Assembly: GCA_946965045.2 (NCBI GenBank)
Contig: OX337232.1
Coordinates: forward strand, 434,001-498,000
DNA from: Epithemia pelagica
Taxonomy: Eukaryota > Protista > Bacillariophyta
Direction: 5' to 3'
DNA: 64,000 bases
Position 1 is the first letter of the stretch. Every line of letters starts with the position of its first letter. Both the position numbers and the translations under genes were made by a program. The notes beneath the pieces were generated by a model. The model worked only from the letters and a program-made list of their open reading frames with translations. It was not told the DNA's origin and searched no databases. Shown here in pieces: positions 3,047 through 33,777 of the stretch.

Positions 3047-3458
3047 CATGGTGGCCGATTAGATTTTGGGCGCGTATCCTGCGTGATCCACCGTGGGACA
3101 CCCCCCCTTATCCTAGGATAAGGCTTAATAATCCGATGAAGGATAACGTTTCATTATTTTTTCCGTTCATGTAAGTGAATGCTGCCATGACAGTGGGAAA
3201 ATGCATCCTTTATCTCTTATTGTTGTTGTTGTTTTGGTGTCAGAGCCTCATTGAATGAGACCTTGCATTTTACCGTCATTCTTGTCATTGATGTTATTTT
3301 AGATCCTCTAGGGTTAAGGTTTTCACCTTTTTGGGATCCATTAGGGTTACGGGATAGCACTCTAAAATAGTTTTAGAGTTTGAAATCGAAGGTATAATAT
3401 AATTAGATACTTTAGAATGGCTCTTGAATGTCAAGTATAATTAGAGGTGGCCACCCTG
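3047..3458. mobile_element. hAT-like MITE, unit 1 copy (left part deleted, holds the Crypton remnant)
   Basis: Ends CATGGTGGCC / GGCCACCCTG; homologous to 31354-31780. Confidence 0.55.
3063..3158 (+). mobile_element. Right-end remnant (96 bp) of the Crypton element
   Basis: Matches 16231-16326, including the 18-bp palindrome CCTTATCCTAGGATAAGG and the TCATTATT terminal repeat. Confidence 0.9.
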
Positions 3459-6400: not shown

Positions 6401-9113
6401 GACGACATGATGCTGGGAGGGGATATGGTCGTTGTTGTTGTTGTTGTAGGATTCGTGGTGGTATGTTGTAAGGCTTGGAAGACAATTGGCTCCGGCACTA
6501 CTACCTCCTCCTCGAAGCCGAGCAATGCGAGAATGCTGGAGTCGAACCAACGCGGTACGACTCCAAGAAGAGACAGAAAGAGGACTGGAAGCCCAACACT
6601 GCACGGGACGAATGGCACACGAGGTCCAACACCAATACCACAAGGATACCGCGGATACCAGACTGGACCGTTTGATGCTGCCTCGACCACTCCGACGACG
6701 ATGCACCACTGTGGAAGAAGACGAAGAATACGGTCGTTCTCGAGAAGAAGACGGACTCCTGGTGCTGTTGCTGCAAGTCTTGTTGTTCTTGTTGCGAACA
6801 ATTGCGAAGGGAAACAGCCACTGCTGTGGAGTGGACACACCCAGAATCGAGAGTGGACAACGACAACGAGAAAGGTAGGAACACAACAAGGACGATCGTG
6901 CCGTCACCACCACCATGGCCCTTTCGAATTCGATATCACCACCACACAAAGCCTTGTTGTTGTTGCTTGTTGCACACTCTTTCAAACTTGAGCGCAGTCC
7001 ACACACTCTTCAACCCTTTCTTGTTGTCGCAGTGAGAGACAAGACCGAGTTTTGTATTTCGGCGTTGCTAGTTGCTACGAAAAAAAGGTTCTGTGTTTGA
7101 TATCGCCTACTCTGTTTTCTGTTTTGCCATCGGATTCTGATGTGTCATTATCATGGCCACGCACCTGTTTTGCAATCTCTAGCCTTCTATATATGGCTGA
7201 AGTGTGATAGTTGTTCTGTTGTGAGTTATCAGCAACCGCTCCGTTTTTGTAAGAATGGACCTGAACGGGAACCATTTACCCCAGCTATCATCAGTCTCGG
7301 TAGATCGAAAGAATGTCAGAGAGTAGGTACGGAGTAGGTAGTCTAGGAGAAGGAGGTTTTGGTGATCCTTCAAATAGCAGGACAACCAACCAACCAACCA
7401 TCCAACCAACACACCAAACCCACCAACCAACCAACACACCAACCAGCAAACACACCTCCTTGAATTCAACAGAACTTGTTGACCGTTTCGATGTCATGGG
7501 ACGGCGCAAGGTCTTTTGGAATGTTTGATTCACAATGCCCTTAACTTTTCCCTTGCCCAACCACTGTGGCTTCTCGCATTGATTTTTCCATAGTTGTGGC
7601 TGCATGGGCCATTACAGTTTCCAATTCTGCTTCATCATGTTGCCAAGCACAGCTCCTTTGTCGTGCGCTCAACAAGTATTGTTAATCGTTGCAAAGGACC
7701 AAAGGAGTCCCCACAATTTGGTGGACGACGACAACGGCGATCTCGATTCCGACGACATGAACAAGAAGAGCAACATGGAAGCAAGACAATTCCATGGCAA
7801 CGACCCACGAGATGTAAATATCCCTCTTGACGACACGGTGCTGTTGTCGTCACGAGATGCTTTTCTTTGTCATCGTCCACCATCATCCAGCAGTCATAGT
7901 AGTTGCTGCAAGAACGGAGGATCTTCATGGTGAAGTACCTGCCTTACGAAAGACGTGCAAATCGCATGGGAACAGACACAAAACTTACGATGACCTACAA
8001 TGACCGACACATTTGCTTCCGAATCGCAGATGCTCACGGTGAGCAAATCGCACTTGGTGAAGCTTGGTGAGCGCTCGAATTTGCCCCAGCACACGGTAAG
8101 AAGTTTTTTAGCTTCCGAATCGCGTTTTGGTGAGCATGAGCATCGCTTTTGTTTTGTGAGACCAAAGGAGGTGAGCCTAGGAGTAGAAAGTATTCAGGAA
8201 CATAGAAGCATGGTAGAAGTTCCAGAGAAACTTGCCCAAGAAGGATGCGATATCTTATCCCAGCGAGAATCTGCGACTGAAAATGAAAGGGAAGGAGGAA
8301 GGGAAAGCCCACGCACTTTTGCTCTCTTCTTCGGCATCACGGCTTCCTTGGGACTACGGACTACACAGAGACCGCCTCGAACCAATAACATTGCTATTGT
8401 TGTGTTAGAAGTAGACAATATCGTGACCTATTCCCGTGCACGGGAATACATGGGAGTCTATCTAACCTGGGAGTCGGTCAGCCGGACTTGCACTCCCACG
8501 GGGACAGAACTACCTAGACACTTCACACGTTGAAATTAGCGATTTTCATGTGAACCTATTAGACTAGGGTGGCCGATTAGAGGGTCTAAGGGATTTTGCT
8601 TAGAAGTATAAGTATAATTATACTCTATTAGAGTATAATTATACCTATTAGCAAGTCTAAAGCCATGGTGTAAAACCTTGTCTCATTATTCGTACCCAGG
8701 ATAAAAATCTTGCCAAAGTTATCCCACATCTAGTCGCACATAATGCATTTTTATCCCAGGATCCCTTATCTCGTTACAAGATAAGCGACATTATGGCAAA
8801 ATAAGTAGTCTTATTTGTCACAGGATAAGATTTTCCCACTAATCCAATGCACTGTAACCACTTAGGGACCGACATACGCGCAACTTATACCACCTGCCGT
8901 CCTATTACACGCACACCCATCCTCACCAAGCTTGCTGACCCCGCGTTGGAAAAGGACAACATCTCAACACAAAATGCACCCATCCAATGACCAACAAAGT
9001 CATGACATACACGTACACCTTGACATTGAAAGATTGACATAGACGTAAATAGATTTCTTCTTTCTTGTATTATAAATGGATGGATTCAAATAGTTTTTTC
9101 TCCATCCACTACC

Positions 9114-12100
9114 ATGGCGCGTTCTCGTTCTCGTGCTTCTTCCCGTGCGTCCTCCACCACGGCCGGTTCCCAGAGCCACACAGACAATGGGGTAACTACA
9201 GAAACAACGAACACAAGCGCACCAACACCTATGGATGATCTGATCAATGCGATAAACAACGACCGTGTGACCACTAATAACCAACCCCCACCAACAAACA
9301 GCCGACCCAGACAAACAAACAGCCAACGAAATCGTCGTCGCGGTAACAACAACCGACAAAACCAACAAAGCATCCTTGATTCTCTTTCGATGCAAGATAT
9401 CGCTCTAAATGGTGGAGAACCTACGACAACTAACAATGAAACAGACGACCGCAATCTTCTGCCCGCTCCGATTGACAACATCGCGGAGTTACGGGCCTTG
9501 ACCAACCAATGTGCTGATTCCCTTATGCGAAAGAATACACGTGATGCATATAAATATCGCATTTTGGAATTTCGCTCCTTTTGCAAATTGGTTTATCCAC
9601 ACGAACCTGTGGAGAATCAATGTGCTGTTGACGGAAATAAACTATACCGGTTCCTTTTTTTCCAAGTTTTCCGCGACCAATCTCGTACAAAATCTCTGAA
9701 ACCCGGTGAATTCGACGTCAATTTGTACCATGAGCTTGATACAAAATACACCGCACTCCTCCGCCCTGTCAACGGAAAGAAGCTTACGGGTAAGGAAATT
9801 TTAGAGGCAATGGAACCTGACAACCCGCTGGGATATTCATCATTGATCACATACCGCGCAGCAGTACGAAAACTGTACGACTACCAACGTCAACGCTCTG
9901 ACGGTAGTATTGCCCCAGATCGCTGGGACTCTGATATTATGAATGCATCGATTAAGAAATTAATAAGTCTTGTACAGGTAAGTTCCAAACCGTGACCCAT
10001 GATCAGCTTATCCTATACTCACCTACATATATAAATATTTTCACCTCACATCACAGGGTCGCACCCCCCGCGTTGCAAAAAGAAAATACGTAGAAAAAGT
10101 GACTGAGTCTTCACCGTTCTCACACTCAGAATTAGTGGGGAAGATCGAAGAATCATTTTGGCTCCGCGGATGCCACAAGTCAGACAACCGTACGACATTT
10201 ACTTCTCTCCGCAACCGATTCTCTTTTTTAATGAACTACGCCTCAATTCTCCGATCAGAAAGTCTACATATTGCGGAATTATCCGACCTGCGAGTATTCC
10301 CCATTAAATGTCGTCAAGATCATGACGAAATGGAGATTGTCTTAATGCAAATGTTCACTGGGAAGACAGTGAAAATGGACTCCCCATCACAGTTTGCCCG
10401 AGCTACACGACACAGCGATGTGTTTTGTTGCCCCATTGGTGCCCTCTCGATGTATCTTGTGTTCCGATTTCAGTCAAACAATGAATTTCAACCAGGTGTC
10501 CGGTTCCCTAATTTTCTGAACAACAACGAATGGTTTGATGTCAAGGTATTAGTTGAGCTTGGTTCAGATCCAGAAGAAGGGATAGACCAGCAGTCCTTTC
10601 GCCGTGATCTTGGTAAAGTATTCAAAAAACTTGGGATCATTTCGAACCATGTAACTCACTGGTGCCGTCACACAGCTCCGACCCACTGTGAATTTAAGGA
10701 GCTTTCTCCAGAATTTGTCAAGCAACTGGGCAAGTATATATATATTTGATTGTTGCCTGTTTGATTCTTGTTCCTAACGTCATTGTTCTCTTCTTCAGGC
10801 AACTGGGATCGCGATACACAGGAATCAAGGTACTCAGCCAAAGTTCCCATATCAGCCATTCGATGCATGGCTGGATACGAAGTAGGAGAGGGCTACTGGC
10901 TTCCCCGCGGTAATGTAAAACTTCCTTCGGATCTTGAAGAAATGCTATGGCCATGGTTGGACGAGGCAGAAACCTATATACTTGGGTTCGCAAAGAGACC
11001 CACCGACAAGCCGACAGCTTTAGAATTCATTCGTTTTCTCAAGTTCATGAGAAAGGTTTTCTTCCAAGATATTGCTGCAATGTTATACTCCATCGAAACA
11101 GCATCAACACCCAATGCATCAGCGCGTTTGACTCACAACTTGCTTGCTAATTTCTCTATTTTATCTTCACCGAAGTTCACTTTATTCAAGCAATCAATGG
11201 CTGAAGCAATCACCAAAGCGTCCAAAATTGAGAACGACCCCAGTACGAAAGTTCTCGACCGCTGCCTCCCCGGAATCAACAAGCGCTTCGAGCTGATCAA
11301 CAATGACATTAAGCGACTATGTGTCGCTGCTGAAGAAACAACGACATCAATTGAAGACACGCATATGAAAACGTCGGAAAACCTAACAGCAATAGAGTAT
11401 CGACTGAACGAAATGGCCAAAAAACGTCAGTTGGCTATTGTGACTGCATTGTCGGATTTTTTTCGTCGGGGGATAACACAACAAGCTTCGGAACTCGGCA
11501 ACTATGCGAACAATGCCGTCACCACTCCACAAGCGAATGGCATAGTACCATTACCAGAACCAATGCAAACCACAGTTGACAAGTTTTTGGAAACTCCACC
11601 AAACGAAACAACAGCCGATGGTTGTCCAGTCACCAGAACACCGATTCTTTCTCCACAAGAACCAACAACAACGATGACTACTACAACTCCTGCAGATGCC
11701 CCCACAACGAATATCACCGATGTAGAATCTCCCGAAGGGGACAGTGATTCTGACAAAGACAATGAATTCGATCTCGTTTCAAACAAGATGCTTTCTTTCC
11801 GTGTTGCTGGGAACACGTCCACTCTGTCACTGGAAGATGTATATTGCGAATTCTTTGGACTAGAGGAGTGGACCGGAAAGCCAATGGACGAAGGTTTCTA
11901 CGGACTGGAGAAAAAATATAAGTCGAAATGGAGAGCCTCCTATTCAGCATCGGAGAAGAATTTTTTCTCCCGTACACAAGCCTTGCTTAAAGGTTTGTGT
12001 GACAAGTGTGGCTCTTCCTATGGAGATTGGAACGAATCTGTACGAGACCAATGCCAAGCATGGGACGCTATCTTAAAGAAAAAAGGTGTCTCTGGTGCCT

Positions 12101-12177
12101 TGCGATATCTTCAACGCACTGGGGATATCGGCAAAAAAGGACAACGCAAACGCAACAACGCCAACGTAGATTCATAG
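9114..12177 (+). CDS. Crypton tyrosine recombinase with C-terminal GCR1_C-like DNA-binding domain (~971 aa); exons 9114-9977, 10057-10729, 10799-12177
   Basis: Catalytic-type motifs ILRSES (R), HWCRH (HxxR), QLG|NW (W) and SRYS (Y). C-terminal LEDVYCEFFG...GLEKKYKSKWR...EKNFFSR resembles GCR1_C. A GT-AG and a GC-AG intron restore one reading frame. Confidence 0.9.
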
Positions 12178-12238
12178 ATCGGTAATGGAAAAAGAAAGTT
12201 GTCTATATGAATCCGTATGATCTCTTACTTCGTTAGTC

Positions 12239-12742
12239 CTACTTCGTATTCAATGGAATCGCAACTTGCCAAATCTGTAGGAACGCAAACTTTTCCGGAT
12301 GTTGATTTTTGAGGTCTTGTGGGGTCATTCCGCAAATATACTGACACTTGAATGATAGGAATTGTTCGTTGTCCGCCGCCATAACACCGTCATAGGTTAG
12401 GTGCTTCCCACCTGTAATGGATGTGCAATACTCAGCCCAGCGATCGTCAATGTGATAAACTTTCAACCTCTCCATACGGGTAAAACACCTCAAGTCATTG
12501 TCTGGATTATCCAGGAATACCGCCAGAGCGTACTCCTCAGTGTTGTATTTTTTGGGGGATATTTCTGGAATTTCCTGAGGTTTCTGGAATAATTTTCGTT
12601 TACTTCCATCATAATCAACAGACGAATCAGCAGACCAGTCTTCGCTAACTTCCTCTTCCTCGTCATTGCTATTCAACGACATTGCCAGGATCTTGTCAAA
12701 GGTATTTGGTGTGGTGGATTTCTCACTTTTTTCGTTACTCAT
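12239..12742 (-). CDS. Crypton accessory ORF2, unknown function; possible upstream exon at 12847-13140
   Basis: Open frame from MSNEK; acidic N-terminus followed by a globular-looking segment; convergent with the recombinase gene. Confidence 0.55.
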   Translation of the reverse strand: MSNEKSEKSTTPNTFDKILAMSLNSNDEEEEVSEDWSADSSVDYDGSKRKLFQKPQEIPEISPKKYNTEEYALAVFLDNPDNDLRCFTRMERLKVYHIDDRWAEYCTSITGGKHLTYDGVMAADNEQFLSFKCQYICGMTPQDLKNQHPEKFAFLQIWQVAIPLNTK

Positions 12743-13148
12743 GATACTATTTATGAGTTGGTTCTGCAGTCTCAACAGATTATGAGAAGGAGGAATTCGC
12801 CTTTCATGTGTAACATATATGTTAGAATATTAAGTATTCTTAAGCTCTATTCCATCTTCGATTTTTTTAACTCGCAAGTCGACATTTCGAGAGTACTATT
12901 ATCTCCAATGTTTTTCAAACCCTTTTCGGAACAATTGTCTACGTCCTCTGGTGCACGACCTTCACTGGTAAGGTCTGTTGAGTTCCGTTCTTCTTGATTA
13001 TTCGATTCTGATCTTGTCCCAGCGGCCAGCACCACATTTTCTGGAAGTGGGTTTGAGATGACTTCTTCGACCGAGGCAACTGTGTCTTGTGATTGGAGGA
13101 TTGATTTGTAGTATCGATTATTCTGTACAGATCTGACCAACTGGATGT

Positions 13149-13315
13149 GACATGGAAAGTTAGTGTTTTGGATAAGACATGGAAAGTGAGTGTTTTGCGG
13201 TGAATCCAGTGCCCCGACCTATTAGCTAGAAGAAGACAAACACTCACTACAAGTCTCGGTTACAAATTGTTAAGGTCGTAGTACTAAGAGTTGATAGGTG
13301 AAGAGTTGATAGGTG
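13149..13315. promoter_or_regulatory. Short direct repeats in the divergent ORF2/ORF3 intergenic region
   Basis: GACATGGAAAGT(T/G)AGTGTTTTG twice (13149, 13176) and AAGAGTTGATAGGTG in tandem (13286, 13301). Confidence 0.4.
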
Positions 13316-13443
13316 AACCAATTCCCAATTTGCGAATTGCGTTTTGAATAAACCTGTCCAACAAGAGATGCATCTGTTTAGGAACAAAACATCGTAGTCA
13401 CCTCTCAATCACGAAATCACCAAAGCACCATTGCATCCCTGTC

Positions 13444-15198
13444 ATGAGCAAGTCTACGAAGCAAACGTTGCTCATTGACCTCTGTGACTCGTCCGAAACA
13501 GAAGAGTTCAAAGTCGAAGTGAGAATGAACAAAAGCAACGACAAGAAGAAGAACAAGAAGGAAGAACAGAAGAAGAACGAGGACGATGTGATTTTGGAAG
13601 TCGATGAGGACAACACGAAAATGACAGAGAGTACAACGGAAAAAGAAGACGACACCGAAGCGCTAGATGGAAGGAAACGTAAAGCAAACGAAGTAACAAC
13701 CAACGAAACAACCAACGAAACTCGCCAGACATTTCAAGGGATGCAAGACGGGTCGTATTATCGTGATACAAAAAAACCACCACATTTCCGAGTGACGAAG
13801 AAAAATAAACAACCACCCCATCCAACAGACGACGACGACGACGAGGACAAGCCTGACCCATGGGCACAGGCTACTAAAGTCACCTATCCTGTCCCACTCG
13901 GAAACAAGGTTTACTACAGACAAAAAGCAACGGACAGAAATCCCCTGATTTTAATTTTTCGGTTTCATATGGAACGTCATCCTCCTCTCCAGGAACATTT
14001 GGAAGACATCGTGAAATCGTTTGTGAAAAACAAGTTCCCTCTTTTACAGACCGATCCAGACAGTATGCAGGCGAATGGGCCACACGAGCTACGGGAAACA
14101 ATGACGATAGACGGAAATATCAAGGACGGATCAGTTCTCGCCCGTGTTGATTTTTATTGCACTACTCACAAGGACTACGATGAAACAAATTACACACAAT
14201 TGTGCCTACAAACTGTGGAATCGCATGTAATCTACACAATGGGAAAAGGGTCCTTGCGCCTGATTGTTGCGTCTAACTGTCTCCATGTGTTCAAATATGA
14301 AGACAACGCCTGGCACTTTTCAACTACAAAAACACTGCAACCAGGAAACAAGGATGATCTCGTCTGTGTGAGACCATGTATGATCACCCAGTATCTGGAC
14401 GAACCAAATTTTGTCAGCAGCTATCCTGTATGTTGACGCAAAAGATACATCGTATCTATTCATACCTACTAGTATCTTAATAACTTCAATAACAGCAAGT
14501 ATCATATTCAGTTGTATATCTCATTTTTTGCTGAATGCCTCACTTCCCATATCCAAGATATGGACGTACCAACAATTATCGGAGATGGTTGTTTCCTTGA
14601 CCGGTACGACCGCGTGTACAGTTTTCACTGTCACACTCCGTTGGAAAGAAATGTGCGCATAAAGATTCTGAAGGACTCCCTGGAGTACATGGGTGATGAT
14701 AGCGCACAGAATAGACGGTTCACTAATCCAAGAGAGACAGAAATGACGACAGGGAGTGGAACAGTTTTTCGAATGAACGAAGAAGTTCGCTTCCATCGAT
14801 TCCCCCCAGACGGTATGCATATTCTGGGGGTTGATTTGTACGAGGCTCGTTTTTCGACGGCAAGTGTTCCTGTATTTCAGGTAATATGGAATTACATCCA
14901 GTTTATGTGTGGCTCCCCAGTGTTACACCACAAGGTTGTGCCGCCTATCCTTCACAAGTACAACGAGGACGGACAGCTGCAAGAGGTATATTCAACGAAT
15001 ATATCATTGTGTGGAACTGTGGGTATGTATATTTCGAATGTCGGTATGGGGATGACACCTCTTCACGACGTGTTGTATCACCCATTTCAGACTGGGTGGA
15101 CAGGCTCTCTATGTGGTCGTGTTATCCGTTGTGAACGAGGTCGTATCCGGCGCGGAGAACCTGAATACATACGCTTTGCATATCGGGGTGGAAGGTAA
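13444..15198 (+). CDS. Crypton accessory ORF3, unknown function (~556 aa); exons 13444-14427 and 14512-15198
   Basis: An 84-nt phase-0 intron GTATGT...TTCAG joins the 330-aa and 228-aa ORFs; charged disordered N-terminus with an RKRK NLS-like motif. Confidence 0.6.
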
Positions 15199-15399
15199 AT
15201 TAGATACTACATCAGTCACATAAGCGTTATTTTAGTGCCATTAAGAATAAGTAATCATTATCAGCAATCGAAATAACGGATCTTTATAACCGTCATGACT
15301 TGAATTGCTATGATATAAGGTACGCGCGCGCTGAACAGAAAGCCGGCTTAGTAAGGTGAAACAAGAACGAATTTGTGAAGAAAGAAGAAACAACCAACC

Positions 15400-15807
15400 A
15401 TGGCGAAGAAGAAGGACGACTCCCAATTTTTGACGAAGGAAGAAGAAGAGGACCTATGGTGTGGAATGTGCAACCGCCGAGGGGAGTGCGACGACTGCGA
15501 GCAGTTGTTCGTTGAAGCCTTTACACGTAAAGCCATGAACTTCTTCGGAAGCCCCGACGATGCCAAGCTGGTGAAACGATTGACAAGTGAGGAAAAGAAG
15601 ATTCAGACAGACAAGATGGACAAAGCTTGGGAGTATCTGTGTAGTTCGAAGAGAAAGCTCCTATTCGAACAGCAAACAGAGAAAGCGAAGAAAAAGACAA
15701 AGCAACAGACGATGGGAGCCTTCATTGTCAAAAGCAAAACCAACAAGAAAACAAAGGGAAAACAAAGGGATGAGACGAAGAGAGAGAGATGTAATCCAGT
15801 ACCATAG
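15400..15807 (+). CDS. Crypton accessory ORF4, small Lys-rich protein with a CxxC-x5-CxxC motif
   Basis: WCGMCNRRGECDDCE; the 3' end overlaps a ~170-bp imperfect tandem duplication (15708-15877 vs 15878-16021). Confidence 0.5.
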   Translation: MAKKKDDSQFLTKEEEEDLWCGMCNRRGECDDCEQLFVEAFTRKAMNFFGSPDDAKLVKRLTSEEKKIQTDKMDKAWEYLCSSKRKLLFEQQTEKAKKKTKQQTMGAFIVKSKTNKKTKGKQRDETKRERCNPVP

Positions 15808-17010
15808 GCAGTTTCTCTAATATTAGGAAAGTATTTTGTATACTGCTCTGTACAATGCAAAGAACCATTTTGACTGAGACGATGGGAGCCTTCATTGTCA
15901 TAAGCAATACCAACAAGAAAAAACACACGAAGAGAGGAGAGAGACCAGTGACCAGTACCGTAGGCAGTTTCTTTAATAGTAGTATACCGTTCGGTAAAAT
16001 GCAAAGTGCCATTTTGACTGTAAGAATAATGTGTAGATCAGTTTCGAAGAAGTACGAGAACCACGATAGAAAAAGACATACCGAAAATGTATAGGGAGAA
16101 TCAACTGTGTTCCTATATGTTCCGAAACGTATTGGGATTTTGGGTGGGTAGGCGTGAAAGGCAGGTGGAAAAACCGTTAACTGTGCGCAGGAGAGATAAT
16201 TTGGTCCAATTCGGTTTTCAGGATTGGGATATTTTGGGCGCGTATCCTGCGTGATCCACCGTGGGACACCCCCCCTTATCCTAGGATAAGGCTTAATAAT
16301 CCGATGAAGGATAACGTTTCATTATTTTTTCCGTTCATGTAAGTGAATGCTGCCATGACAGTGGGAAAATGCATCCTTTATCTCTTATTGTTGTTGTTGT
16401 TTTGGTGTCAGAGCCTCATTGAATGAGACCTTGCATTTTACCGTCATTCTTGTCATTGATGTTATTTTAGATCCTCTAGGGTTAAGGTTTTCACCTTTTT
16501 GGGATCCATTAGGGTTACGGGATAGCACTCTAAAATAGTTTTAGAGTTTGAAATCGAAGGTATAATATAATTAGATACTTTTAGAATGGCTCTAGAATGT
16601 CAAGTATAATTAGAGGCGGCCACCCTGATTAGACCGGTTCCTTTCACGATTTTTATGGACGGGTTTGATTGGTTCATTTTATACTCCTATCATTTTGTTG
16701 CGGGGTTCGTAATTTTTACTATAGTCTGAGTTGTACAATTTTGATTCCTTGTCCGACGTGCTGTGGGTGGGTTTAAGTTGGGAGTGATTGGGAGTGAATC
16801 TTTCCTTCTCTTGTTCCCGCTTATACCACCTTCAACCTTTTACTTTGCGCGCTTCTTGGTCGCGCAAAAATACGAGAGCACACTGACGTGGCGATTCCCA
16901 CCGACAACCGACAATCCTCTGAGTCTGAGCGTTTGTTGCCAAGAGGAGCCGTGCAAATTCCGAAAGAGTTTCTCATACATTGAATTGTTTGTGTTCCCCC
17001 TTTTAGAAAG

Positions 17011-27859: not shown

Positions 27860-28028
27860 TGAAAAGGGGATGAATTGGGAAAATTATGATAGAAGGTTAA
27901 CTAGTTCGTACGTTCCTAAAAGATATGCAAGTAGTGCGTCAGTCCAAGTGTGAGGCTGGTTGGGCAAGGTGACGTAGGACCTTGTGAGTCAGCTCTAGGC
28001 TAGTCTCCATTAGGTCGCACCCTTTTCA
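27860..28028 (-). repeat. 5' LTR of the copia element
   Basis: Direct repeat of 20997-21165. Confidence 0.95.
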
Positions 28029-28230
28029 TCCAGCAGTCATAGTAGTTGCTGCAAGAACGGAGGATCTTCATGGTGAAGTACCTGCCTTACGAAAGACGTG
28101 CAAATCGCATGGGAACAGACACAAAACTTACGATGACCTACAATGACCGACACATTTGCTACCGAATCGCAGATGCTCACGGTGAGCAAATCGCACTTGG
28201 TGAAGCTTGGTGAGCGCTCAAATTTGCCAC

Positions 28231-29859
28231 AGGGACACCCGGAAAATCCTCACAGAGGACTGAAGGTTGACATTTTAGAGAATTGCATAGTACTGTACCA
28301 GTCATCTAAGTATTCATTTGTTATCACGCATGCCTTCTCTTGTCTTTAAGTAACCTAAAAAGATCAACCAGGACGGCGTTCGAATTTACCTAAAGGAAAC
28401 TTCATGTGAAATTTCACATCGTTCATGTGAAGAAAAAAGTGGCGATAGGAATATTCACACTTCATGTGAAAATTGACATGAATATGTGAAAATTCACATC
28501 AACGATGTGAAGGAGATGTGAAGAAGATGTGAAGGAGATGTGAAGACAATGTGAAAACAACAAAAAGGAGAGTATGAAAGAAAAATGGGAGAATAAAGGA
28601 CTATAGAAAGTAGTTACTAGTGTTGCTGTTTCTCCTGATCCTCCGGGACCAGGACCTCATTGATTCCTTGGAGCTGTTGTTGTTGTTGTGTTTCCAGCAG
28701 CCCCGACCAGATCCTTGTTGTAATTGTTGTTGTCATCTGGTTTTGTCTTGTTGTCCGTAGGCTGGGTATTCTTGTGAGAACAAAGCATGCCGTCTTGACC
28801 AAACCAGTGTCAATATCGTTCGTACCTGGGTGTACGAAAACAATTGTTGTTGGCATTCCACAACAACCAGGGATTAGATGGTTGTGTTGATCCTTCACAA
28901 GTGAGACTATGAGTGCCATGGGCATGTTGCTGCTCTTGCAGCGTTGGTTGTTGGGTCAGGGTCAGGACGAGGGACGAGGGACTCTTGATACTGTTGAATT
29001 GTTGGACCAACCGTTCCAATTGAAAGGCCAATTCCCGATGGACTTGACCAGGACAGTGCCACGGTGAATCAGTCGTAGATGTCGTCCTCGTTGTTGTTGT
29101 TGTGCTGGTGGAGGGTGTCGCACTCTAAAACTGGTGGTTGCGGTGGTTGTCACTGGTTGGTTGGTGGTTATCCTGGCTTGGGGTCGGGTAGAATGCCATT
29201 GTCGCTCAAAACAACATTGGCGTGGAGCAAGGGTGTTTTTGAATGAAGGCCACGACGTCCCAAATCCGTGCCATCTTGGCAATGGGATCCAATCAACTGG
29301 TCGTTTCCATCAAATCTTGCCGTCCCAAGGACAACAAAAACAACAACTGTAGTATTAGTGATTGGTAGGTGGTGTAGTGTGATTGGTAGGTGGTGTCGAT
29401 TCAAAATGCCTTGGACCAAACCTGATTCAGCCCGCAACCAATCTTGAGTCGAGAGCATCCAACATGATGATGAGATGATGACGACGACAAATTCTGTGGA
29501 TCCCGAGGTCGTTCGAACATGATGTGAAGACGATGTGAAGACGATGTGAAGACGATGTGAAGAAGATGTGAAGAAATTTTTTCTTCACATGAGATGTGAA
29601 AATTCACATGAGAGGTGCGAATCTTCACCTGAAGATTCGCACCTCTCATGTGAATTTTCACATCTGATGGGAAAATTCGCATATGATGTGAATTTTCCTA
29701 GTGCTATGCGTGCGTGCAAAATCCTTAAGTAGATTACTTTCCTGTCCATGCATGCGCGACCATAAGATTTTTTCAAGATTATTTAAGATCATTGTACTGT
29801 AATATGAGATTTCTACAATTTTGTTTGATTGGTCGCGTGTGAAGATTTTCCGGGTGTCC
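28231..29859. mobile_element. Non-autonomous PIF/Harbinger-like element (1.6 kb) with a captured gene-like interior
   Basis: 22-bp TIR GGACACCCGGAAAATC(C/T)TCACA, 3-bp TSD CAG, subterminal ATGTGAA arrays at ~28400-28560 and ~29520-29700; absent from units 1 and 2. Confidence 0.85.
29592..29665. repeat. Perfect inverted repeat, 36-bp arms with a 2-nt spacer
   Basis: AGATGTGAAAATTCACATGAGAGGTGCGAATCTTCA-CC-TGAAGATTCGCACCTCTCATGTGAATTTTCACATCT. Confidence 0.95.
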
Positions 29860-29984
29860 CAGCACACGGTCAGAAGTCTTTTAGCTTCCGAATCGCGTTT
29901 TGGTGAGCATCAAAATCGCGCTTTTGTTTTGTGAGACCAAAGGAGGTGAGCCTAGGAGTAGAAAGTATTCAGGAACATAGAAGC

Positions 29985-30727
29985 TACCCCCCAGCGGGGG
30001 TGGCTTTGAGGGTGTAATTTCGTGTAGCCACCCCCATCTCTAAGAGCAAATAATAACCTATTTCTTGACGGTAGGCATATCTCATTTCCTCCACCACGAT
30101 AACAACACGGGCCATGGTGTTGCACAGGTTGTTGTGCACCTATTTGGACTCTTGAAACCTGTCTTCCCAGTCATAGACCTCAAACCAATAGTGTAGAATG
30201 CATCTGCATCACCAAAATTTAAAGGTTAAGGCTATTATGCGTCAGACTCATAGGCGCCATGCCTCGTGGCACAGGCACGGAAGCGACGTCTCACAATTTC
30301 GAACGAAGCAACTCAAAGGGACAATATGGCTCTTATCTTGCATTGTTTGAGCACCTATTGATACACAATACACATAGCAGTAGTAGTTACGCACAGCATT
30401 GATAACAAAACATCAACTCTCATGTATTTTCATGCCATCATTGTCTCGTATTGTGCCCGTATTACGCGTCACTGTATTGGTCATTTCCTAGAGTGGCCCG
30501 TATCCACTGTGTCCCTCACAATGCACTGCCATGGTACCATTATGAAGCATATGATGGTCGGATCATGATGGGGTGGCCATTGGAGGTCACCAGCCACTAC
30601 AAAGTTTGATTGTCGTGTTGTTATCGTGGTGGAGGAAATGAGATATGCCTACCGGCAAGATCCAGCGAAAAGAGAAGGGGGTGTTTCAACGAAATTACTC
30701 CCTCAAAAACATTCCCGCTGGGGGGTA
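29985..30727. mobile_element. Non-autonomous Mutator-like element (743 bp)
   Basis: 9-bp TSD CATAGAAGC (29976-29984, 30728-30736); ~120-bp imperfect TIRs starting TACCCCCCAGCGGG. Confidence 0.9.
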
Positions 30728-31353
30728 CATAGAAGCATGGTAGAAGTTCCAGAGAAACTTGCCCAAGAAGGATGCGATATCTTATCCCAGCGAGAATCTG
30801 CGACTGAAAATGAAAGGGAAGGAGGAAGGGAAAGCCCACGCACTTTTGCTTTCTTCTTCGGCATCACGGCTTCCTTGGGACTACGGACTACACAGAGACC
30901 GCCTCGAACCAAAAACATTGCTATTGTTGTGTTAGAAGTAGACAATATCGTGACCTATTCCCGTGCACGGGAATACATGGGAGTCTATCTAACCTGGGAG
31001 TCGGTCAGCCGGACTTGCACTCCCACGGGGACAGAACGAAACTCTAATGTCTAGTCTACCGCTGTCCTCATGGTGAGGACAAGTGTACCCCAGTACATTT
31101 TCCTACGCAACGGAAAATCACTCAATTTTCAAAGTGGTTTTCAAGGCTTGGGGTAAAAATTCTCTACAGGAAATCAAATATGAGGAATTTTTTGATATGT
31201 TCAGTGGACGAATCGGCCAAACTTTTTATAGAAAAAATTTATGTTCCAGATTTGAATTTCTGGTAGGCTTTCTACGTAGGGTACCCGGAGGTAGACTAGA
31301 CACTAGACACTTCACACGTTGAAATTAGCGATTTTCATGTGAACCTATTAGAC

Positions 31354-31780
31354 CAGGGTGGCCGATTAGAGGGTCTTAGGGATTTTGCTTAGAAGTATAA
31401 GTAAAATTTTACTCTACTAGAGTATAATTCTACCTTTTAGCAAGTCTAAACCCATGGCGTAAAACCTTGTCTCATTATTTTTTCCGTTCATGTAAGTGAA
31501 TGCTGCCATGACAGTGGGAAAATGCATCCTTTATCTCTTATTGTTGTTGTTGTTTTGGTGTCAGAGCCTCATTGAATGAGACCCTGCATTTTACCGTCAT
31601 TCTTGTCATTGATGTTGTTTTAGATCCTCTAGGGTTAAGGTTTTCACCTTTTTGGGATTCATTAGGGTTACGGGATAGCACTCTAAAATAGTTTCAGAGT
31701 TTGAAATCGAAGGTATAATATAATTAGATACTTTTAGAATGGCTCTAGAATGTCAAGTATAATTAGAGGTGGCCACCCTG
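31354..31780. mobile_element. Intact hAT-like MITE (427 bp) containing the empty Crypton target site
   Basis: TIR CAGGGTGGCC / GGCCACCCTG with a 7-bp flanking repeat ATTAGAC. hAT TSDs are usually 8 bp, so the superfamily is uncertain. Confidence 0.6.
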
Positions 31781-32200
31781 ATTAGACCGGTTCCTTTCAC
31801 GATTTTTATGGACGGGTTTGATTGGTTCATTTTATACTCCTATCATTTTGTTGCGGGGTTCGTAATTTTTACTATAGTCTGAGTTGTACAATTTTGATTC
31901 CTTGTCCGACGTGCTGTGGGTGGGTTTAAGTTGGGAGTGATTGGGAGTGAATCTTTCCTTCTCTTGTTCCCGCTTATACCACCTTCAACCTTTTACTTTG
32001 CGCGCTTCTTGGTCGCGCAAAAATACGAGAACACACTGACGTGGCGATTCCCACCGACAACCGACAATCCTCTGAGTCTGAGCCTCTCTTCTCTCTGATG
32101 TCGCCATTTCTTGAGATTAACGTTTGTTGCCAAGAGGAGCCGTGCAAATTCCGAAAGAGTTTCTCATACATTGAATTGTTTGTGTCCCCCCTTAAGAAAG

Positions 32201-32806
32201 ATGACAAGCACTCTGTTTTTTTCCCTGTTGGGAAGCTGGCTGTTGGCCGTCCTTCTATGTGCAAAGGCGACGGTGGCATTCCTGCCGACCCGTCCTTTCA
32301 TGAGCCCGAATTTTCACACGACCTTGTGTCGTGCAAGTTCGAAAAACCCGTCCGACATGACCAATAGAGAACTGCAAGTCGCCAATGTCGAGGCAGCAAA
32401 AGAATCAAACAACATTGCAATGGAAAAAGCAGACGCAGCAAACGCCATTGCTGTCGTCGTGCCATAAGTGATTGCTTTTGTTGCTTCCGACAAGATGGAC
32501 AAAATGCAAGCGTCTAACGAAAGCTTGCAGGTCAGAAACGAAAGCTTACAGGAAAGCTTACAGGTAAGAAACGAAAGCTTACAGGAAAGCTTACAGGTAA
32601 GAAACGAAATCTTTCAGTTGGAGCTCAAGAAGCTCGACACAGACAACCAAAAGAAGAAGGATGAAATTCAAGATTTAATTGATGCCAAGAAAGGCGCGAC
32701 TGCGAGGAGTTTATCCCGCCCAAGTGAATTGAATGATGGGGCTGTCGCTAGGCTCAAGAAACAGACGGTGGCCGAACAGGGAAGCTCTTTGCCTTGGCTG
32801 ACGTAA
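32201..32806 (+). pseudogene. Plastid-targeted coiled-coil protein, paralogue 3 (two 11-aa repeats), premature stop
   Basis: TTA(Leu)>TAA at 32465-32467, inside the hydrophobic helix. Confidence 0.75.
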
Positions 32807-33137
32807 AAGTCCTACGTCGAGACCATGGCAAAACAAATGGGTTTTTGGGGCGATCCGACGGGAAATTATGGGAATAGACGCTTTGGCTTCCAACTGAATA
32901 AAATAGAAGAGATATAACGATTAGGGCAAAGAACTTAAGCACAGCACTTTGTTGGGTGGTATTACATTGCCTCATGGACATGGGTTTCCAGAATGTCGAC
33001 ACTTTGGTGCGCCCAACCAAACAGCAATGTAGAACAGGCTTCATTTGTGTGCAGCGTGGAGATACTCAAAAGGTCATTGCACAACATTCAAATTTATAAC
33101 TGCAGTGAAAAGTAGTAGAGGTACCTTAACTCTATGG

Positions 33138-33444
33138 TAGTTACAAACTTGTCCTCAACCACAGCGGTGGTGTCGACGAGATGACCTCCTCGTGTCGCGT
33201 CTATTGGAATCGTCAAGCGGTCGTCGTCGTACAACCACAAGAAGAAGCGAATGGCAATCTCTTCCCAGTATCGTGTGAATGGGACCTGACATCCACCTTG
33301 TTGCGGCAACAACAAGCACAACCAGCGGGGCAACAGCACCATCATGAATTGATCACTGTGAGCAGGGTTGGCTGGTTCTAATTGTGGGATTGCTTGCTGA
33401 TCGAACTGATTTGTCAACATCCACAGGCTGACCTGGTCCACTAT
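33138..33444 (+). pseudogene. Truncated beta-galactosidase fragment, unit 3
   Basis: Matches the start of the 4800-6400 relic; breaks at GGTCCACTATT. Confidence 0.8.
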
Positions 33445-33777
33445 TCAGATATTGCGGAATCCCTGGTATTCATCGGCAATGACATCTTGGACGTAATCCT
33501 TCCATGAATCTCCCGAATCCAACTTGTTGATACGGGCAAAGTACCGGGCCATGGAAATGTGCTGGTTCAAATGATGGCCATCCTCTGTATATGGATTCTC
33601 ACCAGACTCGACCAGTCGTTTCTTTTCGACACCCCATACGGAATCATTGTATTTGTACAAATCTTCTTGGTATGGAATGCTGTTAGAAGTACTCCTAGAC
33701 AAAAAGAAGCGTAGAGTTCCTCCCCGGCCACCAATATGACCCAAATCAAGGTATTTAAATGAAACAGATGATGGCAT
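33445..33777 (-). pseudogene. 5' fragment of a GST paralogue with internal deletions
   Basis: MPSSVSFKYLDLGHIGGRGGTLRFF...EYQGFRNI aligns to 40938-40590; the TVPVA segment and the whole C-terminal half are missing. Confidence 0.9.

Follow-up and report, generated by a model that had tools for sequence, protein, structure and literature searches.

Locus and gene content

Within a window of 64,000 nucleotides (the whole stretch analyzed, positions 434001-498000 of contig C5 in genome G000, which comprises 60.5 Mb in 23 contigs), we identified a 7.6-kb element that is very probably an autonomous CryptonF-type DNA transposon of a diatom genome, cut out and inserted by a tyrosine recombinase of its own and equipped with three extra element genes. 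It codes for the recombinase, ORF2, ORF3/4, and ORF5 (ORF, open reading frame), in agreement with the four genes counted in the initial annotation of the window. The host can be placed among the diatoms because full-length genes for silicon transporters number at least 11 in its genome (with PF03842 scores reaching 756 bits) and the recombinase has a relative in the diatom Seminavis robusta. Coordinates are those of the window unless a contig or locus is given. Lineage A of the element comprises the window copy and a second full copy on C5 (copy 2); lineage B is locus L025, taken from ENA assembly ERZ21939226, whose source is either this organism or a very near relative; lineage D comprises L022-L024, and lineage E comprises L029-L031. 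The insertion, its two core repeats, and the matching empty site are located as follows:

8691-16326 (+): Crypton insertion, delimited by alignment of both junctions against the empty site at 31472
8683-8690 (+): left core copy TCATTATT, on the target side; copy 2 has the same 8-mer, and the left core of lineage B is CCATTATT
16319-16326 (+): right core copy TCATTATT, on the element side
31472-31479 (+): paralogous empty site, a single TCATTATT in an unbroken copy of the host repeat

Ends and empty sites

The insertion amounts to 7636 bp plus one shared 8-mer, with no base gained or lost in the alignment of the junctions. Positions 31296-31479 match the left flank through the 8-mer, and 31472-31880 match the right flank from the 8-mer onwards; the identity between this site and the flanks of the filled unit is mostly 98.9-99.0%, with 94.9% over the 177 bp adjoining the left junction. 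As the unit is part of a tandem array, the 31472 site is evidently paralogous and not allelic. In the whole window, TCATTATT occurs seven times against 2.2 expected. Five of these copies are tied to the element (among them both ends, a remnant at 3151, and the empty site at 31472), and none lies inside the element away from its ends. The presence of TCATTATT at both ends is not a chance repeat.

Copy 2 (C5:1150921-1159954, about 700 kb from the window copy) is 99% identical, is located in unrelated flanks, and has TCATTATT on both sides. All four diverged relatives L021-L024 start with [C/T]ATTATT followed directly by CGTACCCAGGATAA, and three of the four end in ...CCCTTATCCYAGGATAA...ATAAC(N3-4) followed by YATTAT(T). 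In the genome there are exactly six left ends of the form ATTATT-CGTACCCAGGATAA, all of them in the Crypton family. The initial annotation had suggested comparing the core repeats of further copies, and copy 2 and the relatives do share these boundaries and a YATTATT core.

Lineage B provides an allelic empty site, as the flanks of L025 are contiguous in G000 at C1:3997634-3997643. The empty allele reads ...GATTC-CCATTATT-CGTGATT..., and the filled allele reads ...GATTC-CCATTATT-CGTACC... at the left junction and ...AACGTT-TCATTATT-CGTGATT... at the right one. The first base of the 8-mer is C in the target and T in the element, and each base stays with its own flank, which places the strand exchange inside CATTATT. 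Judged from these alleles, the lineage B junctions behave as conservative site-specific recombination with an overlap region of 6-8 bp. A constant core over independent insertions, together with this retention of bases, is not what a target-site duplication gives. Thus, the exact ends and empty site first proposed from the 31472 alignment are now backed by the allelic site of lineage B and by copy 2 with the same 8-mer in unrelated flanks.

Other types of mobile element were also considered. No terminal inverted repeats (TIRs) were found, and likewise no long direct repeats (long terminal repeats [LTRs]), at the element ends; no reverse transcriptase (RT), DDE transposase, tRNA, or Rfam match was present within the element, and RT, RNase H, and DDE domains were absent among the scanned ORFs of at least 80 amino acids (aa). 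We rejected a target-site duplication by a DDE enzyme, given the identical 7-8-mer at independent insertions and the lack of a DDE domain and of TIRs. A retroelement of the DIRS/Ngaro type was rejected as well, as the RT and RNase H domains are absent.

Recombinase

The ORFs at 9114-9995, 10099-10749, and 10768-12177 correspond to the exons of one three-exon recombinase gene, with the following predicted structure:

9114-9977 (+): exon 1, 288 codons, low-complexity N-terminus and then a conserved part; GT donor at 9978
9978-10056 (+): intron 1, 79 bp, GT-AG, phase 0; position conserved in L025
10057-10729 (+): exon 2, with the catalytic R, K, and HxxR
10730-10798 (+): intron 2, 69 bp, GC-AG, phase 1
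10799-12177 (+): exon 3, containing NWDRDTQESRY with the catalytic W and Y, a variable linker, a tail resembling GCR1_C (about 11818-12069), and a basic C-terminus

The position of intron 2 is common to all six other lineages compared, and L025 keeps both intron positions. Profile searches were run exon by exon. As the initial annotation had proposed, we searched for the domain families of Crypton recombinases, and Pfam NDC10_II (PF16787) matched above its cut-off of 26.3 in both exon 2 (58 bits, E value of 9.8e-16) and exon 3 (38 bits, E value of 1.5e-9). The sole PDB sequence match was a weak one to CBF3 subunit A (E value of 0.36). In an alignment of 10 exon 2 sequences, including one S. 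robusta gene and one metagenomic gene, R66 (ILRSE), K103 (GKT), and H201 and R204 (HWCR) are invariant, as are W2 and Y11 of NWDRDTQESRY in the exon 3 alignment. The R-HxxR-W-Y residues read as intact from the window alone are therefore present and invariant, with the addition of an equally invariant catalytic K, and we identify the predicted product as a Crypton tyrosine recombinase of the NDC10_II type with an intact R-K-H-R-W-Y set.

The last ~110 residues, which form the tail of the recombinase, are conserved across the family. A family tail profile aligned with residues 696 to 776 of a related protein, P0023 (hhalign probability of 97.2%, E value of 4.6e-11), in which Pfam GCR1_C spans residues 695 to 776 with 35.8 bits. 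On this transitive homology, and not on the curated cut-off, we accept the predicted tail as homologous to GCR1_C, as the initial annotation had it.

Among named proteins, the recombinase is closest to an "unknown protein" from S. robusta (P0029). Its locus (GCA_903772945.1, CAICTM010000063.1:71667-94294) codes for an intronless NDC10_II-type recombinase of 875 aa, annotated as unknown protein; it does not have the accessory genes and likely represents a CryptonF-like element of another diatom.

Accessory genes

Between the recombinase and the right end there are four further ORFs, which make up three genes:

12239-12742 (-): ORF2, 167 aa from the ATG, divergent from ORF3
13142-13195 (+): 27-bp tandem repeat between ORF2 and ORF3, with two units here and three in copy 2
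13444-14427 (+): ORF3/4 exon 1, charged low-complexity N-terminus and the first domain of ~190 aa
14428-14511 (+): ORF3/4 intron, 84 bp, GT-AG, phase 0, linking ORFs in the same frame
14512-15198 (+): ORF3/4 exon 2, second, paralogous domain of ~190 aa
15400-15807 (+): ORF5, 135 aa

The "three extra ORFs" described earlier were thus right as a number of genes and short by one as a number of ORFs, since 13444-14427 and 14512-15198 are exons of a single gene (the ORF3 open frame as called runs from 13444 to 14436). ORF3 and ORF4 both match a single open frame in L024, and this, together with the alignment of the shared domain, indicates one gene with tandem paralogous domains. The motifs common to the two domains are FHG, PDGxHLxRxDFY, QV..T..Y..G.P.LRI, and a terminal P. 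Joining ORF3, ORF4, and ORF5 into one gene was rejected, as there is no in-frame splice between ORF4 and ORF5 and only ORF3 and ORF4 can be joined by a GT-AG intron.

ORF2 is 76% identical in L025, with a pN (proportion of nonsynonymous differences) of 0.13 and a saturated pS (the synonymous counterpart). Its positional equivalent in the D lineage is on the opposite strand and shows 20-22% identity. We found no Pfam match for ORF2, the only hints being below threshold (SH3_5, E value of 0.03; SH3-C_UBE2O, E value of 0.14), and a Tudor/SH3-like barrel was not adopted on such hints. ORF5, a basic protein resembling a zinc knuckle, contains an invariant LWCGxC-x5/6-CxxC and a YL..KRKL.F motif, and then a basic tail. 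A PIP-like QQTMGAFI with basic residues is found only in lineages A and B and is missing in the D lineage.

Gene order and orientation are the same in lineages A, B, and D. Even in the E lineage, an ORF3-type gene adjoins the recombinase of L029 (34% identity, E value of 4e-25), on the opposite strand. The ratio of nonsynonymous to synonymous substitution rates (dN/dS), computed between the window copy and L025, is 0.03-0.11 for the recombinase exons (0.11 for exon 1 and 0.03 for exon 2), 0.16 for ORF3 (exon 1 of ORF3/4), 0.17 for ORF4 (exon 2), and 0.07 for ORF5, while the intergenic region between ORF2 and ORF3 shows no DNA similarity to lineage B and could not be aligned. These low ratios next to unalignable intergenic DNA point to selected genes of the element and not to recent passengers. 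On this comparative evidence, the three extra genes are evidently conserved genes of the element family under purifying selection and not cargo, and the suggestion of a "cargo-carrying" lineage in the initial annotation calls for this qualification, as they are kept in the same order in diverged lineages.

The domain of ORF3/4 has no match in Pfam and none in a profile search of PDB sequences. When 1.84 billion representatives were searched exhaustively with HMMER, the domain turned up in 11 proteins, the three least similar of which all trace to assembly ERZ21939226 of the same organism, one of them in a Crypton and the other two at loci without a called NDC10_II gene. AlphaFold (AF2) models reached a pLDDT (per-residue confidence) of 69 and a pTM (predicted template-modeling score) of 0.71 for the ORF3 domain and a core pLDDT of ~80 and a pTM of 0.65 for the ORF4 domain. 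Both modeled domains would have the same topology, a strand and a helix followed by a curved antiparallel sheet of 7 or 8 strands. Their best structural resemblance in the PDB is to NTF2/SnoaL-like cones (Z of 3.7-4.9, with a template-modeling [TM] score below 0.5), and we did not accept this fold, as a Z of up to 4.9 with a TM score below 0.5 is too weak. A library of viral structures gave no match to the models (best E value of 0.02, TM score of 0.12). In all, Pfam, the PDB profile, word-based search, HMMER, and the ESM Atlas features provided nothing conclusive on the fold or function of ORF3/4, nor did comparison of the AF2 models with the PDB (Foldseek, VIA), the Atlas, and the viral structures provide a conclusive fold. 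No accessory gene was found beside the recombinase relatives of S. robusta or of the metagenomes.

Subterminal motifs

Both ends of the element contain repeats of one short motif:

8691-8840 (+): left subterminal region, beginning with CGTACCCAGGATAA; this start is conserved in all A-D lineages
16231-16318 (+): right subterminal region; the palindrome TTATCC-TA-GGATAA occupies 16276-16289, and GGATAACGTT adjoins the core

At the left end, GGATAA/TTATCC motifs are found at 8699, 8719, 8751, and 8823. There are four in the first 146 bp of the element and three in the last 51 bp, where ~0.1 would be expected at the background of the window; the window as a whole has 44 against 21.7 expected, 7 of them in a total of ~200 bp of end sequence. 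The right region is conserved as CCCTTATCCYAGGATAA in all lineages, and every lineage retains the perfect 14-bp palindrome. We infer that the repeats within ~150 bp of the ends are likely candidate binding sites for protein. A long rod-like fold across the joined ends is absent (z of -1.5).

In the E lineage (on G000 contigs C9, C10, and C2), exon 2 of the recombinase is 55-58% identical, the core is CTTTATTT, and the left end is CGTGCCAGGCCAAAG (L029:1066, L030:1052, L031:8837), with GGCCAA-type repeats replacing GGATAA. Core and subterminal motifs thus appear to change together with the recombinase across lineages.

Copies, age, and activity

The genome contains ~11 loci with NDC10_II-type recombinases. 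Exons 2 and 3 of the recombinases of L021-L024 are 45-86% identical (aa) to the window copy, and lineage B is 74-85% identical to it at the DNA level. In the window copy every reading frame is open. Copy 2 differs from it by 0.87% substitutions and one extra unit of the 27-bp repeat; it has a 10-bp deletion in recombinase exon 1 (at 9280) that breaks the frame and a 1.38-kb nonautonomous TIR element inserted at 16224/16231. A third trace of lineage A lies in the window:

3063-3158 (+): solo remnant in the neighboring tandem unit, in which the final 96 bp of the element adjoin the flank equivalent of 8581

The remnant lacks 109 bp on the host side and 7540 bp of element sequence. It starts at the same base where copy 2 carries the TIR element, and both are without TGGGAT, which the window copy and lineage B retain as the ancestral state. 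The remnant may therefore descend from an element like copy 2. Host units of ~5.8 kb are arrayed in tandem in the window at 612-20996, with starts at 612, 6401, and 19493, and a further, partial unit lies at 28026-33450; the units are 97-99% identical. The presence of the remnant in a neighboring unit implies that the insertion predates the duplication of the tandem units, which are now ~1-1.7% diverged. As for lineage B, the presence of one allele with and one without the element means that the family has moved recently enough to be polymorphic. The proposal that the element is still mobile consequently stands on indirect support, consisting of the intact ORFs, copy 2 at 0.87% divergence, and the polymorphism of lineage B, and the activity of the window copy is something that we infer from sequence.

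Comparison with known Cryptons and Starships

CryptonF elements combine a tyrosine recombinase with GCR1_C, occur in fungi and oomycetes, and have 6-bp terminal repeats, while CryptonS elements, known from oomycetes and the diatom Phaeodactylum tricornutum, lack GCR1_C, have a specific conserved C-terminus, and mostly end in TATGG (PMC3212892). NDC10_II is the domain of a yeast centromere protein (Cbf2/Ndc10) that is derived from CryptonF recombinases (PMC3212892). An active element of this type, CryptonF-1_cRei, has been described in Chlamydomonas, where it targets CAYCG and excises cleanly, yet its copy number rises (Lopez-Cortegano et al., PMC9977147). Thus, the initial annotation was right, according to the first of these papers, that a GCR1_C tail marks CryptonF and not CryptonS, and too narrow in confining it to fungi and oomycetes, as the host range also includes Chlamydomonas (PMC9977147).

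The element shares with CryptonF (Crypton-Cn1 and relatives; Goodwin et al. 2003; Kojima and Jurka 2011) a recombinase related to Ndc10/Cbf2 with a C-terminal GCR1_C, and both of the features that we looked for, NDC10_II and the GCR1_C tail, were found. It also resembles them in having no TIRs or LTRs, short direct end repeats that would act as the crossover, a nearly identical short target, and clean empty sites. It differs in its host (a diatom here and fungi, oomycetes, and Chlamydomonas in the published cases), in a core of 7-8 bp (YATTATT) instead of 4-6 bp, in the three extra conserved genes within a total of 7.6 kb, and in the conserved GGATAA arrays and 14-bp palindrome near the ends. 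With CryptonS, it has in common that it is a stramenopile Crypton, and some CryptonS carry a second gene, a C48 peptidase (PMC3212892). However, a peptidase domain is absent here, and a GCR1_C-like tail goes with termini of YATTATT / CGTACCC...AACGTT, so that neither the absence of GCR1_C nor the TATGG termini of CryptonS were found. Starships are Crypton-related tyrosine-recombinase elements that also move extra genes as a unit (PMC10104507, PMC11162782), but they extend over tens to hundreds of kilobases, with a DUF3435 captain and a variable host-type cargo, whereas here a small fixed set is contained in 7.6 kb and the Pfam match is to NDC10_II and not to DUF3435. A literature search, with Repbase outside its scope, found no paper on CryptonF in diatoms or on Cryptons with these accessory genes.

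Proposed mechanism and alternative explanations

By analogy with other tyrosine-recombinase elements, the element would be excised as a circle, with a predicted joint ...GGATAACGTT-TCATTATT-CGTACCCAGGATAA..., that is, GGATAACGTT-TCATTATT-CGTACCCAGG. It would then insert by conservative strand exchange within a matching target core of 7-8 bp (YATTATT), which would involve no net base change and leave the core on both sides of a filled site and once in an empty site. The GGATAA/TTATCC arrays near the ends would be the likely sites of protein binding. ORF2, ORF3/4, and ORF5 most likely serve the cycle of the element itself, given that they are kept under purifying selection; their possible roles include assembling or directing recombination, coupling to the nucleus or to replication, and regulation. 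A more specific version, in which the accessory proteins form a dedicated transposition module with ORF5 as a directionality or replication-coupling factor and ORF3/4 as a scaffold on the GGATAA arrays, is tentative and, in our judgment, rather unlikely. If true, the element would be the first among eukaryotic tyrosine-recombinase transposons to have helpers on a par with those of phages and integrative elements (Int/Xis/accessory systems), and these helpers would be built from folds without known relatives.

Several observations weigh against an autonomous CryptonF-type transposon. The 8-bp flanking repeat resembles a target-site duplication, a likeness opposed only by the constant sequence and the lack of a DDE enzyme. 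The direct Pfam score of the tail for GCR1_C is 15.1 bits, under the curated cut-off of 23. The donor of intron 2 in lineage A is GC (GCAAGT), where all relatives have GT, and this could weaken expression. The window copy is not very young, its insertion being older than the tandem duplication, and lineage A amounts to two full copies, one of them broken, plus one remnant. No circle junction and no head-to-tail or tandem copy was found in the assembly, and excision, circle formation, and the splice model are predictions.

Two other explanations concern the role of the extra genes. They could be passengers or genes captured from the host, a cargo of the kind carried by Starships, with no part in transposition. 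The extra ORFs indeed have no recognizable transposition-related domains, and the recombinase relatives in S. robusta and the metagenomes do without them. However, the same genes stand in the same order beside recombinases that have diverged to 45-79% aa identity, an ORF3-type gene is found even beside an E-lineage recombinase with 58% identity in exon 2, the computable dN/dS values range from 0.07 to 0.17, and we saw no free-standing host paralogue with a known role. The HMMER matches of the ORF3/4 domain, with the three least similar all in ERZ21939226, also speak against a captured host gene, and we regard this origin as improbable. Even less probable, to the point that we give it very little credence, is an integrated episome or virus-like element, in which the circle would be replicated or packaged with the aid of the accessory proteins and the recombinase would be only an integrase. 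Four conserved genes and a likely circular form would suit such an element, the PIP-like motif of ORF5 with its basic residues would fit coupling to the replication clamp, and Cryptons of Chlamydomonas gained copies despite excision (PMC9977147). Nevertheless, we found no signature of a capsid, replicase, polymerase, or helicase, the ORF3/4 models are unmatched in the viral structure library and resemble NTF2-like cones only weakly, and the PIP-like motif does not extend to the D lineage. The scan of the genome and metagenomes found no free circular contig or joint, and the left-end 20-mer was absent from the metagenome contigs.

Cryptons are among the least understood eukaryotic transposons; to our knowledge, Chlamydomonas is the only host in which they have been seen to move, and there is no Crypton biochemistry. 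As an autonomous CryptonF-type transposon, the element would be a well-defined substrate, with base-exact ends, a crossover region of 7 bp, conserved candidate motifs, and an intact recombinase gene. It would add diatoms to the hosts of CryptonF-type elements, only CryptonS having been reported from them when the groups were defined (PMC3212892), and shows that a Crypton lineage can keep three extra genes as a fixed, selected set. These genes would supply tyrosine-recombinase transposition with new helper functions or else form a new selfish gene set, and both possibilities are directly testable in a transformable diatom.

Nested elements and host repeats

The TIR element nested in copy 2 is a nonautonomous DNA transposon of 1379 bp (G000:C5:1158480-1159858) with 91-bp TIRs (CCCTCGGTATCAGTG...) and at least 40 genome copies of 95-100% identity; of six copies inspected, half have a repeat in their flanks, of 2 bp at most. 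The 5' region of the lineage B Crypton (ENA ERZ21939226 ctg1354l, L025:5575-8211) contains a nested piggyBac-like element of 2.65 kb with a DDE_Tnp_1_7 domain and an ORF of 726 aa. Copies that are 99% identical are found at G000:C13:583845-586504 and C7:683948-686600, and the family looks recently active.

In the tandem array, unit 2 is without ~260 bp (equivalent to 2736-2995) that are present in units 1 and 4. The Crypton lies within a host repeat of ~500 bp (8514-8690 plus 16319-16700; 31296-31830) that bears the partly inverted motifs GGCCACCCTG / CAGGGTGGCC at its two ends and may be a miniature inverted-repeat transposable element.

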